Below, piece after piece: positions 1 to 62,551 of a stretch of DNA of 64,000 nt. The notes under the pieces are model-generated. The model was not told where the DNA came from and made no database searches. It saw only the letters and a program-made list of their open reading frames with translations. The stretch lies in sequence record NC_070958.1; one strand, given 5' to 3'. How positions within the stretch are numbered: the first letter of the stretch is position 1; the number at the start of each line of letters is the position of its first letter. Both the position numbers and the translations under genes were made by a program.

Positions 1-2
1 CA

Positions 3-269
3 GAACGAGAGAACTGTATTCGTGACCTCCTCTCTGTTTACGATGACATCAGGGGGTTCTGGAAACACAAGAAAGGTTTCTATATTGGACATTGCCCAAG
101 CCACCCTAGTGAGTTGCGTGGAAGAAGAATGATCCACGGCCATACCCACACTAAGGTAATACAAGATCAGCGCTTCATCAACGTTGCTATCGATCTTCTC
201 CCTAACGGTCCTGTAAATATGAAGGACTTGGTGTCAGGAGATTACCGTAGTTATCGAGACCCGGTATAA
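3..269 (+). CDS. Metallophosphoesterase (calcineurin-like), C-terminal part; truncated by window start
   Basis: My translation: ...GHCPSHPSELRGRRMIHGHTHTKVIQDQRFINVAID...*; HxPxHP and GHxH motifs typical of phage phosphoesterases; TAA at 267-269. Confidence 0.7.
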   Translation, partial: ERENCIRDLLSVYDDIRGFWKHKKGFYIGHCPSHPSELRGRRMIHGHTHTKVIQDQRFINVAIDLLPNGPVNMKDLVSGDYRSYRDPV

Positions 270-273
270 ACTA

Positions 274-303
274 ATCCATCACTGCCTTAGGGTGGTGATG
301 GGT
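274..303 (+). terminator. Hairpin, probable intrinsic terminator
   Basis: ATCCATCACTGCC-TTAG-GGTGGTGATGGGT, 13 bp with G-U pairs, directly after the stop codon. Confidence 0.6.
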
Positions 304-316
304 TGATCTCCATATC

Positions 317-341
317 TTTTCAAGTAGATATTATCTAAGTG
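317..341 (+). promoter_or_regulatory. Early-promoter-like motif, copy 1
   Basis: TTTT CAAGT AGATATTAT CTAAGTG; matches the 10-copy intergenic consensus; resembles the phiKZ early core TATATTAC. Confidence 0.75.
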
Positions 342-373: not shown

Positions 374-847
374 ATGAATCTCTTAAATAAAGCACTCGTC
401 AAAATGTTCATGCTGGCAGGTTGCCGGAGTCGAATCTGTGGGAGGGATCGTCAAGTCTTCATTCTGAAGAAATGTGTAGTGAAGATACCAGTGATGTCCA
501 ATGGCTGGTTTGAATTCGTCCGTGGTTATTATTCCAATCTCAAAGAGATGGATAGTATCCGAGGTTACGAAGGTAATTTCCAAGAACATCTTCCAGAAAT
601 ACTGGGGAGTTATTTATTTGGGTTAGTCGTCGTTTACAAGAAATATCGTGAGATTATGGATGGTAAAGATGACAATGAAACCGGCGACTTTGCCGAGTAC
701 ACTAGGTTCCTAGGTAAACTTGATGACATCCGGAGAAATGAGAAAAACTCAGAAAAATATATCTGGACTCAAGACACCAAGATCTTTAACTTTGCCTGGG
801 ATAAATATGGCCGGGTGGTAGTCATCGATCTGGGTACACCTTATTAA
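374..847 (+). CDS. Minimal protein-kinase-like protein (paralogue 1)
   Basis: VVKIP, N-x-x-E helix, catalytic loop D-T-K-I-F-N (DxKxxN), terminal DLG; SD AAGGAG. Confidence 0.7.
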   Translation: MNLLNKALVKMFMLAGCRSRICGRDRQVFILKKCVVKIPVMSNGWFEFVRGYYSNLKEMDSIRGYEGNFQEHLPEILGSYLFGLVVVYKKYREIMDGKDDNETGDFAEYTRFLGKLDDIRRNEKNSEKYIWTQDTKIFNFAWDKYGRVVVIDLGTPY

Positions 848-857
848 CAAAGAGGGA

Positions 858-1262
858 ATGATTATGTCTGAAGTAAACATGAGTGAACTTATGAAGAAAG
901 TTCATGAGAAAGGAATGAAAGCGTTTGAGGAAATGGACCATAAGGAACGCTGGGCTTTCTGGACCGCAGTCTCCGTCCCACCTCTCCGTTTTGTTCTTCG
1001 TAACGCAATGTCTTGCGAAGATAAGAAGTTGCGGTATGACCATCGTGACATTTCGTTGGTGCTGGGTTACGTATTGGGAATGCACAAGGTCGCTCCCATC
1101 CGTGACCTCATGAACAGCCAATCCATTCGTCTGGCCATTGTTGTTCTCCTGGATGCAATGACTGGGATGAAAGAAATGGATGCAGTCATGGACGACATGG
1201 TCAATATCGCGGCCAAAACGATGAACACCATCGACAACAAGATACTCTACTATTACCAATAG
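858..1262 (+). CDS. Hypothetical protein
   Basis: 134-aa ORF with SD GAGGG, packed between the two kinase genes. Confidence 0.75.
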   Translation: MIMSEVNMSELMKKVHEKGMKAFEEMDHKERWAFWTAVSVPPLRFVLRNAMSCEDKKLRYDHRDISLVLGYVLGMHKVAPIRDLMNSQSIRLAIVVLLDAMTGMKEMDAVMDDMVNIAAKTMNTIDNKILYYYQ

Positions 1263-1270
1263 GCGGGTGT

Positions 1271-1660
1271 ATGAAACCTGAAGTCATTGGAACAACTCGC
1301 CACGTAAGGTTATTCAAACATTTCGTGGTAAAGTTTCCTAGGATGACAACGTGGTTTGAGAAAGGCTTTAATCTAAGAGTCTTTCTCAATAACCTTTATC
1401 TCAATCGTAGAGAGCGCAGGTTGGCAAAGAAGTATAAGGGAGCCGAAGGTATTCCTCATATTTACTTTGCAGACCCATTCGGTTTTGTTGTTATAATGAA
1501 ACGTTACAACACTAATCTGAAGACTGAACAATTCTGCGCACTTTATAATTCACTACTCGACAGGACTGAAATAGATCCTGAATTTTGGGAAGATGATTCG
1601 AGTGTCCCCAACTTCGGTTTAACTGAGGACGGGAAACTTGTTAAAATTGATTTGGGGTAA
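1271..1660 (+). CDS. Minimal protein-kinase-like protein (paralogue 2)
   Basis: VVKFP, NRRE, IPHI, FGFVVIMKRY, D-S-S-V-P-N, ends KIDLG*; aligns by eye with 374..847. Confidence 0.7.
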   Translation: MKPEVIGTTRHVRLFKHFVVKFPRMTTWFEKGFNLRVFLNNLYLNRRERRLAKKYKGAEGIPHIYFADPFGFVVIMKRYNTNLKTEQFCALYNSLLDRTEIDPEFWEDDSSVPNFGLTEDGKLVKIDLG

Positions 1661-1663
1661 CTA

Positions 1664-2020
1664 ATGCAACACTGTACTTTTGATACTGTAGGTGAATTGG
1701 TAGGCGTCTTAAATGGTCTCGGGAAACCAGAAGCCATGGTGGATAGCTTTTATGTCTATGAACGACAGGAAAGAAACTACATTGTGATGGAACGAACCGA
1801 GGAAGGGGAAACTTCTTTCAACTTTGCTCCAGTCCGTCACAATCACCCTTATCAAGGTTATGACGATATCGTAATCTCGTCCTCACTCACCGTAGGTAAG
1901 TTTATCGAGATGCTAGAAACCTTCCCACTGGATACACACATCAAGTACATCCGGTTGAAAGGTGCCGACAACATGGTGGCAATGAACGTTGAAGAAGACG
2001 GCATTGTGATTCACGATTAA
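1664..2020 (+). CDS. Hypothetical protein with internal duplication
   Basis: TVGELVGVLNGLG and TVGKFIEMLETFP repeats; operon packing. Confidence 0.7.
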   Translation: MQHCTFDTVGELVGVLNGLGKPEAMVDSFYVYERQERNYIVMERTEEGETSFNFAPVRHNHPYQGYDDIVISSSLTVGKFIEMLETFPLDTHIKYIRLKGADNMVAMNVEEDGIVIHD

Positions 2021-3234: not shown

Positions 3235-4617
3235 ATGACCGACGAACAATATATCAATGAAGAGGTAAGTGAAATGAACCAGCATGATAACACGTTCCAG
3301 GTTGGACTCCGCCGCCTTCAAATCGCCATTTCCGGTGGTTGGGGTGAAAAGGAGCGTCAGATTGCCAAGGCGGCAACAGAGCTCTATATGAAGAACAAGC
3401 GTGAGTTCCTGCTCTGCAAAGACCCTGTTGCGTTAGCAGGAATGATGGGTAATACTGAGCGTTACCCTGAACTCGAGGGACTCCTGGAAACAGGGACTAT
3501 CGCAACCAATGCAATCCTTCACGCATTTGTATCCACCACTCAATTCAACTACAAGTATGATGAGTGGGCCGGCGATACCATGGGTTACTGGGGTGTCAAT
3601 CCCGGTACCATCAAGAACAAGTTTGAACACTGGTACCTGGAACTCATTCGTCAGCTGATGACCGAGACCTCCAAGGATGACCGCACTGGAACAGGGACTC
3701 GTTCCCTGACCACCGCCGTGTACAAACACGATCTTCGTGAATCGTTCCCTCTGCTCCGTAGCCGATTCCTGAAACCGGAGAACCCTGGTAAGGAATACAT
3801 CTGGATGCTTTCCGGTTCCAACAACGAAAAGGAACTGGCTGCAATGGGTGTTCCCTTCTGGAGCGAGTTTGCCGATGAGACCGGTGATCTGGGTCCTGTG
3901 TACGGTTACCTGTGGCGCTACTGGCCTAATGGTGATGGTACTACCACCGACCAAATCGAATACGTTCTGGAGACTCTCCGCAAGTCCCCTGAAAGTCGAC
4001 GTGCTGTGGTCAGTTGTTGGCACCCTGGGTTGATCCCCGATAGCAAGACTCCGCCCAAGGAAAACTACAAGGTAGGGAAACAAGCACTGACTCCGTGTCA
4101 CTATGCTTTCCAATTCCTGGCAAGTCCCATCGGGTTCTGTGAGCGTCTGGCGTGGGCTAAACAACACAAGCCCGAACAGATCGCATTCCTGTATCCCGTG
4201 ACCGGGTCTGACTGGACCGAAAGGACGGAAGAAGCAATGAATCGGATTGGAGTACCCAAGTACTACCTGGACCTCCAATTCAACATGCGGAGTTCTGATA
4301 CTGTTCTGGGTCTTCCGGCAAACTTCAACTTCTACGGCCACATGTGTCACGCATTCGCCAAAGAGTTGAACATGGTTCCTCGTTTCCTGTCCTACACCGG
4401 GACTGACGTCCATTTGTACGTCAACCATATCAAGGGTATGAAGGAAGTCTTTGATTGGGTGAAACAAAACAAAGAGAAAGTCTTTGACGAAGTATCCCAA
4501 ATCAAAATCGTGGGCGAGTTCGAAAACCTGTACGACATGAAGCCTGAAAACTTCGAGTACATCAACTACAGCCGTGAGCTGGTCGGTCCGGCCAAACGCT
4601 TCCCGGTTGCTGTTTAA
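3235..4617 (+). CDS. thyA: Thymidylate synthase (ThyA type) with about 129-aa N-terminal extension
   Basis: DRTGTGT, DLRESFPLL, DLGPVYGYLW, catalytic ALTPCH, MRSSD..LGLPAN, HLYVNH; start refined to ATG 3235 (ATG 3274 possible). Confidence 0.95.
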   Translation: MTDEQYINEEVSEMNQHDNTFQVGLRRLQIAISGGWGEKERQIAKAATELYMKNKREFLLCKDPVALAGMMGNTERYPELEGLLETGTIATNAILHAFVSTTQFNYKYDEWAGDTMGYWGVNPGTIKNKFEHWYLELIRQLMTETSKDDRTGTGTRSLTTAVYKHDLRESFPLLRSRFLKPENPGKEYIWMLSGSNNEKELAAMGVPFWSEFADETGDLGPVYGYLWRYWPNGDGTTTDQIEYVLETLRKSPESRRAVVSCWHPGLIPDSKTPPKENYKVGKQALTPCHYAFQFLASPIGFCERLAWAKQHKPEQIAFLYPVTGSDWTERTEEAMNRIGVPKYYLDLQFNMRSSDTVLGLPANFNFYGHMCHAFAKELNMVPRFLSYTGTDVHLYVNHIKGMKEVFDWVKQNKEKVFDEVSQIKIVGEFENLYDMKPENFEYINYSRELVGPAKRFPVAV

Positions 4618-9146: not shown

Positions 9147-9171
9147 TTTTGAAGCAGATATTATTAGGGTG
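9147..9171 (+). promoter_or_regulatory. Early-promoter-like motif, copy 2
   Basis: TTTT GAAGC AGATATTAT TAGGGTG. Confidence 0.75.
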
Positions 9172-29572: not shown

Positions 29573-29597
29573 TTTTCAAGCAGATATTATCATGTTG
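29573..29597 (+). promoter_or_regulatory. Early-promoter-like motif, copy 5
   Basis: TTTT CAAGC AGATATTAT CATGTTG. Confidence 0.7.
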
Positions 29598-30196: not shown

Positions 30197-30619
30197 ATGG
30201 CAAAGAAACCAACCAATAAGACAGGCTTTGAGCGTAATAAGAATTTTGTGCCGGATGAACAACTGACCGATACCCCGGCTCGGTTATTCAGGAAGATCTC
30301 CAACGCCATGGGAATGAACCTCAGCAAGTGGACATCCTACATGGGTGAATACTTGCGTTGGTTACACCCGGAAGACTCTGGAACACCACTGGAAGTCAAG
30401 AAGGCAAGATCGACCACTCTGGGTAACGCGCAAAGTGCTTACTACTACAGCAAGTCTCTCAGCTTTAATAAGCTGATTGCAGGAATGAAAATTCTTAAAT
30501 TCAAGAAGGTCACTTTCACCATTACCGGCGAAACTGCAACCGGTGAAGTTATCACCGTGAGCGAGACTACGTTCCTTAATCGCGATACACCAACACCTGA
30601 AGACCCGTCCGAAGAGTAA
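30197..30619 (+). CDS. Hypothetical basic protein, likely conserved in phiKZ-like phages
   Basis: SD AAGG; 140 aa. Confidence 0.7.
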   Translation: MAKKPTNKTGFERNKNFVPDEQLTDTPARLFRKISNAMGMNLSKWTSYMGEYLRWLHPEDSGTPLEVKKARSTTLGNAQSAYYYSKSLSFNKLIAGMKILKFKKVTFTITGETATGEVITVSETTFLNRDTPTPEDPSEE

Positions 30620-30628
30620 CGCGGTCAT

Positions 30629-30660
30629 CTGTTACCCCTACCATGTGGTAGGGGTAACAG
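30629..30660. terminator. Perfect 14-15 bp hairpin
   Basis: CTGTTACCCCTACC-ATGT-GGTAGGGGTAACAG. Confidence 0.7.
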
Positions 30661-30701
30661 TCAACTTATCCAATTTCTTTTTTGTCTAAATAGAGGTCGT
30701 A

Positions 30702-32897
30702 ATGGCTAATAAAGTTAGCACGCAAGACAAGAACCTTGTGACGAGGTCCTTTCGTCTTTTGAGTGACGGCGTTGCAAACCCGACCGATGAGTATATAAAC
30801 ACAGACTACGATCTGTACACCAGTTTCTTCTCAACGGCGATCGGGGATAACAAGTACATCAACCCGCTACCAGGATATGGATTCAACACGGATCCCTATC
30901 CAGAACCCATCATGGAAAACCGATACGGTAACATGGGTCGTTTCTACAAACGCATCCATCACGACAATGCAGAAATGGTAACACTCACTGCCTGTGTCCC
31001 TGAGTTTACAGGTATCCTTCCATTCCTTATGAATATGTTTGACTATAGCGCCGCCGTTATGGTTAACAAAGGTCGTGCTCCTGGTTGGGCGTTCTATATA
31101 GGTCAAGCCGCCGGTGCGATTGCGTTCTTCCCTGCACAGATCGTAGCCGCCAGTTGGAACTTCTTCGAGTACCTCACTCAACAACCGAAGAACCAATGGT
31201 ACTACGGCAAAGCTGCGATGGGTCAGTACTTGACAGCAGCTCAAGGTATGTTCAACGACCTGATGGTTGCTGCTGGATATACATTGACTGTTCTTCCCCA
31301 AGGTTCCCAGGTAATGGATACCAAGTTGGGTGATCGACAATCAAACGGCCTCAAAGGTTATCGGACGCACAGTGACCAAGCAAAGAGTAACTACAGTTAC
31401 CTAAACTCCATGTTCCCTGATGCGATTAACCAAGACGGAACTGTGGACATCACAAGGGTCGCGTTACGTGGTGTGAGGAAATATCGCTATTTCCTTAACA
31501 AGGTTAAGTCGTTGGATGAAGGCTCTCGTTTCCGCAGTGTCGGGGAGAAAGACCTCGCTATTGAACGTATTCTGAATGGTCTTATTAAAGACGGTAACTT
31601 CATGAATGGTTCTGTTGGGCCGGCGGGGAAAATAGGGACTTACGAGATACTCACCAAGGAACTCGGGTCAGTAGGTGCGTCACGGGGTTCTGATGAGATA
31701 TCCTACCCTGAAGTTGCATCTGCTTATACCAACCCCAGCGCTTATGCCGAGATTCTTCCTGCCGACATGGACACAGGTCAAGCAAGTGGTTTTGATAGTG
31801 TCCGTGCCAAGGTGGAAGGTCAGGTGTCTGCCGAACGCGAAGAACGTTTCGGAATCAACCAAGGTAACTCCGGTGCGGCTGATGGTGCCACGTCACCACA
31901 ACTGCAAGGAACAGAGGCGTTCTTTAATGACACCAATAATCTTTCTGAAGATTCGTGGCTGACACAAGTTGGTTCCTTGTTGATGGATCACCTTTACGGT
32001 GGTACTGACGGGATCACGTTTAGGACAGAAGGGACAGGGGCTGTTAGTGATTCATTCTCTAACGCTTCTCAACAATCTGCTATTGCTAGCAGCTTCAACA
32101 ACACAGTACAAGCTGTCCAAGACTTCAAGTTCAACATGGGTGGTGGTGTTACTGGTATCGAGTTCATTGACAAGGCGATGGAGATCGTTAAAGACTCTGT
32201 AACTGGTCTGATGGCTGGTAGTGTGGTTGGTAACCTCCCGTTGGCATTGTTGGGTAACTCCAGGGTTATCATTCCAGAACACTGGCAGGATTCAACTACC
32301 AGTCTTCACAGTGAAACGATCAACCTGTATTTCCAGGCTCCTTACGCACATCCTTATTCGATCGCCACAAACGTATTCCTTCCAGTAGCGTTGATCATGC
32401 CGTTCTTTGTTCCATTCAGTACAGGTGGTGCGATGTATGGCTCTCCGTTCATGGTTAAGAGCTTTGCTCGTGGGAAAGGAATCATTCGTTCTGGTATGGT
32501 TCGTAACGCATCCATGACTTGGGGTGAAGGTCCGTTGGGTTGGACTACGGATAAGAAACCGTTGAACTGTCGAATCACTCTGGATTTGGTTGACTTCGAT
32601 CCGATTCTTTCCGTTCCGGTTACTCGCGTCACTAACCCACTTGACTTGGTTAACATCGCTAAGCAATCTTCCCGTTATCTTGGTGACATCGGTAAGTACA
32701 ACGACTGGGTGAACCGGGTTGCTGGCCTGGACTATATCGACACTGTTCTTCGTTATAACGACATGAACCGTCGACTCACTCGTTTCACCAATGACGTTGA
32801 AACCATGTTCTCCCCTGCCAACGTAGCAAACATTGTCAACGACTCCATTATCGGTGACGTTTCCCGTTTGTTTGTTGGTCGTCCTATGAACCGTTAA
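30702..32897 (+). CDS. Putative baseplate/tail-tip protein (phiKZ gp182-like by synteny)
   Basis: 731 aa, Gly/Ser-rich, next to the large virion peptidoglycan hydrolase gene. Confidence 0.55.
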   Translation: MANKVSTQDKNLVTRSFRLLSDGVANPTDEYINTDYDLYTSFFSTAIGDNKYINPLPGYGFNTDPYPEPIMENRYGNMGRFYKRIHHDNAEMVTLTACVPEFTGILPFLMNMFDYSAAVMVNKGRAPGWAFYIGQAAGAIAFFPAQIVAASWNFFEYLTQQPKNQWYYGKAAMGQYLTAAQGMFNDLMVAAGYTLTVLPQGSQVMDTKLGDRQSNGLKGYRTHSDQAKSNYSYLNSMFPDAINQDGTVDITRVALRGVRKYRYFLNKVKSLDEGSRFRSVGEKDLAIERILNGLIKDGNFMNGSVGPAGKIGTYEILTKELGSVGASRGSDEISYPEVASAYTNPSAYAEILPADMDTGQASGFDSVRAKVEGQVSAEREERFGINQGNSGAADGATSPQLQGTEAFFNDTNNLSEDSWLTQVGSLLMDHLYGGTDGITFRTEGTGAVSDSFSNASQQSAIASSFNNTVQAVQDFKFNMGGGVTGIEFIDKAMEIVKDSVTGLMAGSVVGNLPLALLGNSRVIIPEHWQDSTTSLHSETINLYFQAPYAHPYSIATNVFLPVALIMPFFVPFSTGGAMYGSPFMVKSFARGKGIIRSGMVRNASMTWGEGPLGWTTDKKPLNCRITLDLVDFDPILSVPVTRVTNPLDLVNIAKQSSRYLGDIGKYNDWVNRVAGLDYIDTVLRYNDMNRRLTRFTNDVETMFSPANVANIVNDSIIGDVSRLFVGRPMNR

Positions 32898-53297: not shown

Positions 53298-54281
53298 ATG
53301 AACGTTATGAAAATGATTCACGCACCGCTTGACAATCTCGGTGAGTACCACGTCGGGATGTTCCCCGAAGATCCTGAACGAGTCTACTTGATGGACTTAA
53401 ACTTCCACGAACACAATTCCATGGTGATCCATCGCTACACCAAACACGAAATGGGTGAACTCTCAAAGATATTCAAGAGTGTTCTTACCTCCATGCAATT
53501 TGCAAGGAATGCGACCATCAAGTTCGATATTGCTGAATACGGCGTATCGGTCATCAAAGGGGCGAGTATCGAGATCCGTAATCTCGAACACGTTCATCGC
53601 CCTAATCTGACAATGAGATTCTGGGGACGGGCGAGTGATAAAGACCCTAGCGGTGAACTCGATTGGTTCTCCCAGACTGAGCGTGCACTACTGGTCCTTT
53701 CTGAAATCTTCGGAGCAATGCACGAGCTTAACGAACCAGGTAAGAAAGGAAAACTCTCGACAGTGATGCGGTTGTTTAAGAAGCATTCGTCAGAACATGA
53801 ACTATCGGAAAAGCAGTTTGTCGATTTCATCGGCGCTACCAGACCGGATAGACGCGAACTGATAAACGACATCATCATGATCGGGCACTCGCTGAGCGAT
53901 GGTCCTGTTCACCATTCCGGGTTAACGTTTGCAAGTACCGCTGACCACTATCATCTTGCACTGGATAAAGGAGAGCACCTCCCTGCATTGATAAATAGTT
54001 TCAGCAAAGTAGTCCGGGGTGAAGATGCCGTGGATCACTTCACGGAATACAACGGGGAATACCCCTGGATGTCCCATAGCTTTATGGGTTATTCTGCAAA
54101 GAAAGGGATGCCCGCCTGGAGAGACCGAACTGTCGTTATGGGGTATAACACCTACATGAAGACAGGACGGTTCAGTACTTTGACGAGTGTAGATGTACTT
54201 GAGTATATTGTTCAAGTACTTATCGAGATTGAGGAACGAGTGAAACGACTAGTCGAACTCTATCCTCCTAAGACCAAGTAG
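53298..54281 (+). CDS. Hypothetical protein (start moved to ATG 53298)
   Basis: SD AGGAG before in-frame ATG 53298. Confidence 0.75.
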   Translation: MNVMKMIHAPLDNLGEYHVGMFPEDPERVYLMDLNFHEHNSMVIHRYTKHEMGELSKIFKSVLTSMQFARNATIKFDIAEYGVSVIKGASIEIRNLEHVHRPNLTMRFWGRASDKDPSGELDWFSQTERALLVLSEIFGAMHELNEPGKKGKLSTVMRLFKKHSSEHELSEKQFVDFIGATRPDRRELINDIIMIGHSLSDGPVHHSGLTFASTADHYHLALDKGEHLPALINSFSKVVRGEDAVDHFTEYNGEYPWMSHSFMGYSAKKGMPAWRDRTVVMGYNTYMKTGRFSTLTSVDVLEYIVQVLIEIEERVKRLVELYPPKTK

Positions 54282-54344: not shown

Positions 54345-54369
54345 TTTTCAAATCGATATTATTAAGGTG
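54345..54369 (+). promoter_or_regulatory. Early-promoter-like motif, copy 7
   Basis: TTTT CAAAT CGATATTAT TAAGGTG. Confidence 0.75.
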
Positions 54370-62526: not shown

Positions 62527-62551
62527 ATCTCAGATAGATATTACCTAAGTG
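62527..62551 (+). promoter_or_regulatory. Early-promoter-like motif, copy 10
   Basis: ATCT CAGAT AGATATTAC CTAAGTG. Confidence 0.75.

Follow-up and report, generated by a model that had tools for sequence, protein, structure and literature searches.

A widespread phage family of candidate minimal kinases whose chains end at the DFG-equivalent motif

Can a kinase do without everything that follows its DFG motif? Kinase structural biology treats helix alphaF and the rest of the C-terminal lobe (C-lobe) as the scaffold of the catalytic machinery. Two genes of Aeromonas jumbo phage D6 (MN131137.2; Ludhianavirus, 259.8 kb) raise the question: D6_0189 and D6_0191, whose products we call K1 and K2. 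They lie near the start of the stretch of DNA analysed here, a 64-kb window that is 100% identical to this record and begins at its position 186001 (Table 1). An earlier note, made from the letters of the window alone, described the pair as paralogous minimal kinases with equivalents of the kinase beta3 Lys, alphaC Glu, catalytic loop and DFG motif and with no C-lobe. Both open reading frames (ORFs) sit exactly where it had placed them, and translation bears out its account of their ends: K2 stops at DLG itself (...VKIDLG-stop) and K1 three residues later (...VVIDLGTPY-stop). Here we ask what such proteins could be. The reading that we prefer, with a probability of roughly 0.6, is that K1 and K2 are stand-alone minimal phosphotransferases without an activation loop, probably Ser/Thr kinases, that belong to a widespread phage family.

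The two proteins are 30% identical over 144 alignment columns (BLASTP, E = 2e-13), and each contains every motif that had been listed as common to them: G..R.V, VVK(I/F)P, N..E, P.I, FG.VV..K.Y, D.(K/S)..N and IDLG. The sequence marks of the protein-kinase-like (PKL) group are present, namely a beta3 Lys/alphaC Glu pair and a D-x-x-x-x-N loop with a Mg-binding Asp about 18 residues on. The Lys and the catalytic Asp are 97 residues apart in K1 and 88 in K2; the Asp-Asn and Asp-Asp distances are 5 and 18 in both. The corresponding spacings in protein kinase A are 94, 5 and 18. Judged by sequence, then, the spacing of the motifs matches that of canonical kinases. The catalytic Asp is not preceded by His-Arg, and such 'non-RD' loops fit the absence of an activation loop. 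In K2 the catalytic-loop Lys is substituted (DSSVPN). A hidden Markov model search of all six-frame ORFs in the window returned K1 and K2 and no third member. We rejected a lipoprotein signal in K1 (an N-terminal, lipobox-like L-A-G-C): the string is not conserved in orthologues, a Lys breaks the hydrophobic stretch, and AlphaFold2 models the region as a helix.

Which of these residues are kept among homologues? When 18 phage and metagenome homologues are aligned, G23, R26, K37, P39, E58, G83, D134, D152 and G154 of K1 are invariant and N139 is nearly so. A larger alignment of 89 sequences, covering 85 protein clusters from many phage lineages, has a mean column identity of 27%. In it we find the Gly of the Gly-loop (G23 in K1, G7 in K2) in 87 of the 89 sequences, the Arg three residues after it (R26, R10) in 88, the VAIK-type beta3 Lys (K37, K21) in 87 and the alphaC Glu (E58, E48) in 88. 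The catalytic Asp (D134, D109) is present in 83, the remaining 6 having Glu; the Asn at +5 (N139, N114) is present in 82 and the catalytic-loop Lys in 69. The Asp and Gly of D-x-G (D152-L-G154, D127-L-G129) are kept in 88 and 83 sequences. As a consensus the family has G-x-T-R-x-V ... Y-A-I-K-x-P ... E ... D-x-K-P-x-N-F-G-Y ... V-K-L-D-Y-G. In many members the catalytic loop and the end of the chain are D-A-K-P-E-N...D-Y-G-stop, and the string D-x-K-P-x-N-[FY]-G...VK[LI]DYG occurs literally in 37 of the 89, mostly followed by one residue and then the stop. Subdomains VIII-XI of Hanks (the activation segment with its APE, alphaF, and alphaG-alphaI) are absent from the family: 79 of the 89 sequences end within three residues of D-x-G, and the longest tail has 23.

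Structure prediction leads to the same fold. With the 89-sequence alignment as input, AlphaFold2 gave confident, compact models of K1 and K2, with predicted local distance difference test (pLDDT) scores of 89.5 and 92.7 and a predicted TM-score (pTM) of 0.82 for each. The modelled chains follow kinase topology as far as subdomain VII: strands beta1-3 lead into a long alphaC, then come beta4-5 and an alphaE-like helix, again long; the catalytic loop goes with a short helix, and a beta-hairpin precedes DLG. We compared the models with the PDB and BFVD by Foldseek and inspected the top 50 PDB matches. For K1 all 50 are kinase-like folds, with Rio2 (6fdn_B) at E = 3.3e-4; other matches are WbdD, PRPK/Bud32 (query TM-score (TMq) 0.52-0.56 for PRPK), Cph001, BRAF, PknB, PpkA and AceK. 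For K2, 46 of the 50 are kinase-like and 4 are SAICAR synthetases; Archaeoglobus fulgidus Rio2 (1zar) matches at E = 1.6e-3 and TMq 0.57. The top matches, almost all PKL folds, have Foldseek probabilities of 0.9-1.0 but E-values of only 3e-4 to 1e-2. The nearest BFVD entries are proteins of the K family and other small phage kinase-like proteins; among them is the homologue from RP12, whose UniProt label is 'Protein kinase domain-containing protein'. In GenBank, too, a few annotators name members Ser/Thr kinases. Residue spacing, AlphaFold2 and Foldseek thus agree on the kinase equivalences proposed earlier and on the missing C-lobe. K1 and K2 are very probably kinase-like both in fold and by homology.

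How far does the family extend? K1 (E = 5.9e-13) and K2 (E = 3.1e-10) match phrog_4301, labelled 'unknown function', and every homologue tested belongs there as well (E = 1e-20 to 8e-66). The phrog_4301 profile has 225 positions because of a few unusually long members, that of phage RP12 for example, and this hides the typical end at profile position 167-168. Members occur in at least 102 phage records, the number returned by one tblastn query alone. A profile search of 5.8 billion proteins gave 85 clusters with lengths of 92-157 amino acids (aa) and a Pfam domain in none; most members have 115-157 aa. The carriers found by tblastn and profile search include Aeromonas jumbo phages (Chaoshanvirus, Ferozepurvirus, AhC3_1, Plateaulakevirus), the T4-like Tequatrovirus and Dhakavirus, the N4-like Gamaleyavirus, Seuratvirus and Asteriusvirus (350 kb). 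Further carriers are phages of Erwinia, Kosakonia, Klebsiella, Edwardsiella, Shewanella and Rhizobium, Pseudomonas phage OBP and Ralstonia phage RP12. Escherichia phage PaulHMueller, which was isolated on E. coli K-12 and which we take to belong to the BASEL collection, has a member too. In Salmonella lambdoid prophages a 123-aa member lies between the Rz/spanin and terminase Nu1 genes, a moron-like site. HicAB and a DNA methylase are encoded near it; accessory 'moron' genes are common at this position. A 1149-aa hit (P0005) of the representative search proved to be an unrelated repeat protein and was discarded.

Do the chains really end where they seem to? Sequencing error or decay of full-length kinase genes could in principle produce short frames. 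Rare longer relatives exist (RP12, 209 aa; AH04, 163 aa; Kc263, 267 aa), and the ORF that follows K2 is in the same frame; both points speak for this possibility. Yet the tails of the longer relatives match no kinase model in Pfam and can be aligned with one another over one helix at most. AerS_266 and AhC3_1 encode, elsewhere in their genomes, proteins of 252-253 aa whose C-terminal part is homologous to the product of the ORF after K2; the same-frame arrangement is conserved in neither phage and is therefore probably due to chance. The stops of K1 and K2 are the same in D3, D9 and LAh10, independently sequenced relatives of D6, so that four Ludhianavirus genomes agree, and truncation recurs in 79 of the 89 aligned sequences. 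Between D6 and LAh10 (92.9% DNA identity) the ratio of non-synonymous to synonymous substitution rates (dN/dS) is 0.024 for K1, 0.066 for K2 and 0.064 for the 134-aa gene between them; values of 0.02-0.07 mark all three as real genes under purifying selection. Sequencing error or readthrough past DLG is effectively refuted by the conserved stops in these genomes and in the family, and the chance that the short frames are artefacts or relics is negligible. From the alignments, truncation at D-x-G is a property of the whole family and not an error. Two of the grounds on which the earlier note would have fallen, the lack of any PKL-fold match and frames that run on beyond DLG, do not apply. The Kc263 and AH04 members, both annotated as Ser/Thr kinases, have Glu for the catalytic Asp, and their C-terminal tails are not homologous.

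K1 and K2 represent two types. In a maximum-likelihood tree the proteins from Aeromonas jumbo phages form two well-supported sister clades, one for each type and each with a Shimodaira-Hasegawa-like approximate likelihood ratio test (SH-aLRT) value of 99, so the duplication is older than the split of Ludhianavirus, Chaoshanvirus, Ferozepurvirus and AhC3_1. The K1 type retains D-x-K-x-x-N and has an extra N-terminal helix and a three-residue tail; K2-type proteins end at the Gly of D-x-G. The two genes are directly adjacent in AerS_266 and PS1 and 3 kb apart in AhC3_1. CF8, AVP1, ACP1 and pAEv1810 have the K1 type without the K2 type. A partnership of K1 and K2 is thus possible, but it cannot be obligatory. 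PS1 and PS2 also carry a third member, which lies about 6 kb from the K1/K2 pair and belongs to the T4-like/Asteriusvirus type.

How might such a chain work? Each protein would be built from a five-stranded N-terminal lobe with alphaC, a hinge and one long helix resembling alphaE; the catalytic loop follows, and the chain ends at the Mg-binding D-x-G. Mg-ATP would lie under the Gly-loop, its adenine capped by the Val and by the Ala or Val of the VAIK-type motif. The Lys-Glu pair would place the phosphates, and the Asn and the D-x-G Asp would hold the metals. The catalytic Asp would then activate a hydroxyl group, to which the gamma-phosphate would be transferred. With no activation segment, P+1 pocket or alphaF-alphaI, the cleft would be permanently open, and specificity would be low or would come from elsewhere. 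From D-x-K-P-x-N without His-Arg and the missing activation loop, we expect constitutively open, non-RD enzymes of the Ser/Thr type with little intrinsic selectivity. Alternatively, a host or phage protein might dock on the surface that the missing alphaF leaves exposed. In infection these proteins could serve as portable accessory genes that modify host or phage components. Portable genes are what they look like, given single members in unrelated phages and the moron-like prophage site.

Several observations weigh against the preferred reading. Foldseek gave only modest E-values, 1e-3 to 3e-4, with TM-scores of 0.45-0.6. Even with E-values up to 1 admitted, Pfam PF00069 (Pkinase) matches neither K1 nor K2, nor any other sequence among the 89; the best Pfam hits, ABC1 or PIP49_C at E = 0.06-0.08, provide no significant kinase link. 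NCBIfam, PADLOC and phmmer/hmmsearch runs against the PDB (two profiles) gave nothing significant for the family. K2-type proteins lack the catalytic-loop Lys (DSSVPN, DAHMNN, DAHINQ, DACISN), and one K2-type orthologue has Gln for the Asn. The two hydrophobic spines of canonical kinases depend on alphaF as their anchor, so a chain that ends at DFG may be unstable or inactive alone, and a docking partner (self, paralogue or target) may be required. Finally, Rio2 and Bud32, whose folds match best, are chiefly ATPases that work within RNA-protein machines.

This last point leads to a different idea: that the family consists of ATP-hydrolysing switches, or of phosphotransferases acting on small molecules or glycans, and not of protein kinases. 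Rio2 and Bud32 work on the ribosome and tRNA machinery; WbdD is a sugar kinase, Cph001 an antibiotic kinase and LicA a choline kinase. These proteins and AceK, rather than classical Ser/Thr kinases, head the Foldseek matches, and the K2 clade is without the catalytic-loop Lys of Ser/Thr kinases. As a weak further hint, 4 of 21 loci from unrelated phages (PS1, the T4-like ESh17, Shewanella phage SXP01 and a 416-kb contig) have tRNA gene clusters within 0.4-4.5 kb of the mini-kinase. That proximity may instead reflect hyperplastic accessory regions, and could be a coincidence of accessory-gene hot spots; the D6 window contains no tRNA cluster. Against the idea, most members combine D-x-K-P-x-N with a VAIK-like [YF]-A-I-K, both hallmarks of Hanks-type kinases. 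Small-molecule kinases, moreover, generally build their substrate pocket from post-DFG helices, which are absent here. We consider this alternative unlikely, though the least so among the rivals of the kinase reading.

It is also conceivable that the proteins transfer nothing. They might be non-catalytic nucleotide binders or pseudokinase-like decoys that bind ATP, a nucleotide signal or a host protein. The whole alphaF-alphaI scaffold that organizes the catalytic and regulatory spines is missing, and very small single-gene accessory elements in many phages are reminiscent of many anti-defence binders. However, 92-99% of the sequences conserve each Asp of the catalytic and Mg-binding sites and the Asn, against the mean column identity of 27%, and a pure binder would have no use for such a pattern. 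We regard this explanation as improbable. Taken by parts, some phosphotransfer or ATP-hydrolysing activity of the family is likely; for protein Ser/Thr kinase activity in particular the odds are about even. The boldest form of the preferred reading is that a chain of about 120 aa ending at D-x-G is a working protein kinase, either the smallest self-sufficient core known or a 'half-kinase' to which the host or phage protein that it docks on lends the missing C-lobe platform in trans, the target thus completing the enzyme. We consider that form less likely than not. If it is true, the mini-kinase would be a portable tool of many phage lineages, used to phosphorylate host machinery or defence proteins.

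Do the neighbouring genes belong to the same system? The earlier note proposed a kinase/adaptor/kinase/phosphatase switch, expressed early, in which the metallophosphoesterase gene upstream (D6_0188), K1, the 134-aa protein (D6_0190) and K2 act together; the kinases might form a heterodimer, use the 134-aa protein as a substitute C-lobe, or phosphorylate host defence proteins or small molecules. In its strictest form the model makes K1 and K2 an obligate heterodimer. Its identification of the flanking genes holds. D6_0188 matches phrog_547 ('phosphoesterase', E = 1.2e-39) and has the GNHD and GHTH motifs of a calcineurin-like metallophosphoesterase; its match to Pfam Metallophos_2 (E = 0.018) is below threshold. 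The 134-aa protein is indeed an orphan beyond the genus: it matches no family, tblastn against 50,697 phage records found 7 records, all Ludhianavirus, and a search of 5.8 billion proteins found the protein itself alone. In each of the four Ludhianavirus genomes these genes stand side by side on a single strand, and all of them are under purifying selection; K1-type and K2-type genes occur together and are adjacent in AerS_266 and PS1; and in AhC3_1 the phosphoesterase gene is about 2 kb from a K2-type gene.

The switch itself finds no support in a wider comparison. A protein without homologues outside one genus is not a general solution for the missing C-lobe, and we rejected the 134-aa protein as a conserved C-lobe in trans. 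The phosphoesterase family occurs in 888 phage records, most of them without a mini-kinase. Among ten other phages compared, AhC3_1 is the one with the genes close together; in the other nine (PS1, AVP1, ACP1, pAEv1810, Kc263, AH04, SXP01, OBP and pEt-SU) phosphoesterase and mini-kinase are 28-223 kb apart. The K1 type occurs without the K2 type in the four phages named above, and more than 100 phages have a single family member with unrelated neighbours. Clustering of ORFs over 25 loci found no neighbouring family shared beyond close relatives, so the members are stand-alone. In D6 itself a hairpin and a promoter-like motif separate the phosphoesterase gene from K1. A single four-gene switch is thus very improbable. 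In LAh10 the codon aligned to the D6 ATG of the 134-aa gene (858-866; 2358-2366 in extracted locus L002) is not Met (IVMSEV...), so translation may really begin at the third codon. The LAh10 annotation starts this gene far upstream, overlapping K1.

Where, then, does transcription of K1 and K2 begin? The hairpin directly after the phosphoesterase gene is terminator-like, has no U-tract and was not called by a simple terminator scan; it could act as a factor-independent terminator or mark a site of processing. The promoter-like motif upstream of K1, noticed earlier, recurs on the + strand. Copies of TTCAAGYAGATATTAT lie at 319-334, 9149-9164, 29575-29590 and 54347-54362, with a looser copy near 62530, each 26-113 nucleotides (nt) upstream of the first long + strand ORF (at 9149, the ORF from 9277). 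Over both strands there are 5 matches against 0.8 expected, the fifth being weak (- strand, 54145-54160, 3 mismatches), and none of 100 shuffles reaches 5. The motif is often preceded by cTATAtcTT and does not fit the -35/-10 geometry of sigma-70; it is probably a phage promoter class. A scan for sigma-70 promoters found none before K1 and fewer sites than in shuffles. Given the hairpin and the motif, K1 most likely opens its own transcription unit.

Downstream of K2 come four small genes and then thymidylate synthase, with no gap over 29 nt: K1 and K2 head a tightly packed operon that extends into that gene. Co-transcription with thymidylate synthase, from which alone we infer timing, suggests early or middle expression of K1 and K2. 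The D6 thymidylate synthase has an N-terminal extension of about 133 aa without a Pfam match, and insertions as well, 315 residues spanning 255 profile positions. Its homologue in AhC3_1 has only 344 aa and lies directly 3' of the K1-type gene there.

Table 1. Positions of features in the D6 window and in other sequences (L numbers denote extracted loci)
Feature	Sequence	Position	Strand	Remarks
Metallophosphoesterase gene D6_0188, 3' end	D6 window	1..269	+	202 aa; cut by window start; neighbour
RNA hairpin	D6 window	272..305	+	15-bp stem; directly after phosphoesterase stop; -22.6 kcal/mol, z -6.07, 0 of 200 shuffles as stable
Promoter-like motif TTCAAGTAGATATTAT	D6 window	319..334	+	40 nt upstream of K1 start codon
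K1 (D6_0189)	D6 window	374..847	+	157 aa; PKL core, Hanks subdomains I-VII, additional N-terminal helix
K1 catalytic loop to DFG equivalent (DTKIFN...IDLG)	D6 window	773..835	+	Asp-Asn +5, Asp-Asp +18
134-aa gene D6_0190	D6 window	858..1262	+	Between K1 and K2; Ludhianavirus only
K2 (D6_0191)	D6 window	1271..1660	+	129 aa; mini kinase-like core, K1 paralogue
K2 catalytic loop to terminal DLG	D6 window	1595..1657	+	
118-aa gene (phrog_13970)	D6 window	1664..2020	+	Same frame as K2, after stop and one codon
Thymidylate synthase gene	D6 window	3235-4617		460 aa
Salmonella prophage member	L017	6001-6372		
Salmonella prophage member	L018	6001-6372		
Salmonella prophage member	L019	1736-2107		
Kc263 member	L014	1150-1953		CEHVPKN
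AH04 member	L015	1186-1677		CEYIVDN
Third member in PS1	PS1 record	30341-30703		
tRNA gene cluster	L005	647-1988		
tRNA gene cluster	L007	2776-3349		
tRNA gene cluster	L012	40-1070		
tRNA gene cluster	L020	103-686		

What is new here is not the resemblance to kinases, since some GenBank and UniProt records already call members kinases. The family has no curated Pfam or NCBIfam model. Literature searches on the PHROG, on phage minimal kinases and on kinases without a C-lobe found no description of it, and the whole family, as a kinase core ending at DFG and widespread in phages, appears to be undescribed. The mini-kinases are about half the size of the smallest kinases known to us; typical members, at 115-130 aa, are roughly half the size of Bud32, OspG or HopBF1. 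With a natural, widespread family under strong purifying selection that has all the ATP, Mg and catalytic residues and nothing after DFG, one can test directly how small the catalytic unit of the kinase fold can be. It also constitutes an unannotated candidate kinase class in jumbo, T4-like and N4-like phages and in lambdoid prophages. A survey of kinases in the BASEL phages covered only homologues of the T7 kinase and P1 Doc (PMC13645617).

How does the family compare with known systems? It shares with Hanks-type Ser/Thr kinases the Gly and Val of the Gly-loop, [YF]-A-I-K, the alphaC Glu, D-x-K-P-x-N and D-[YFL]-G at +18. It differs from them in having no His-Arg before the Asp, a single-Gly Gly-loop with an invariant Arg, and no APE, alphaF Asp or alphaH-I Arg (subdomains VIII-XI). 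RIO2 and Bud32/PRPK, the best structural matches, are like K1 and K2 small PKL domains without a classical activation loop. Unlike K1 and K2, they have 220-290 aa and a helical C-lobe after DFG, and RIO2 has an N-terminal winged helix; their catalytic loops lack D-x-K-P-x-N, which is dominant in the phage family. K1 and K2 are not RIO/Bud32 members: they match neither the Pfam RIO1 and kinase-like models nor NCBIfam, and have no post-DFG sequence.

The bacterial effectors OspG and NleH have kinase domains without Hanks subdomains VIII-XI (PMC12756638), and OspG requires bound E2~ubiquitin for its active conformation (PMC9950578). In architecture the phage family is analogous, lacking an activation segment and substrate-binding helices, and the partner requirement of OspG is a plausible analogy for a mini-kinase completed by a partner. 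OspG and NleH, at about 190-300 aa, retain helices C-terminal to DFG, whereas the phage proteins stop 0-3 residues after DxG. Neither effector is among the top 50 Foldseek matches of K1 and K2, and no sequence match to them was found.

A final comparison is with the kinase of phage T7, gp0.7 (T7K). The two families are distinct: hhalign of the 89-sequence profile gave a probability of 0.04, and we rejected membership in the gp0.7 type (PHROG 2828 versus 4301; DPV versus D-[YLF]-G). T7K is also about twice the size and is fused to a shut-off domain. Like the phage family, however, it has very little sequence after its DFG equivalent, DPV at residues 213-215 of a kinase domain that spans 1-242 (PMC13645617). 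T7K is hyperpromiscuous and phosphorylates most host and phage proteins (PMC13645617), and by analogy such action is the most likely functional model for the family. T7K and JSS1_004 are phage-encoded early kinases that disarm host defences (PMC13645617, PMC12345140). Since promiscuous phage kinases do so, a second, stripped-down class is worth testing for the same role.

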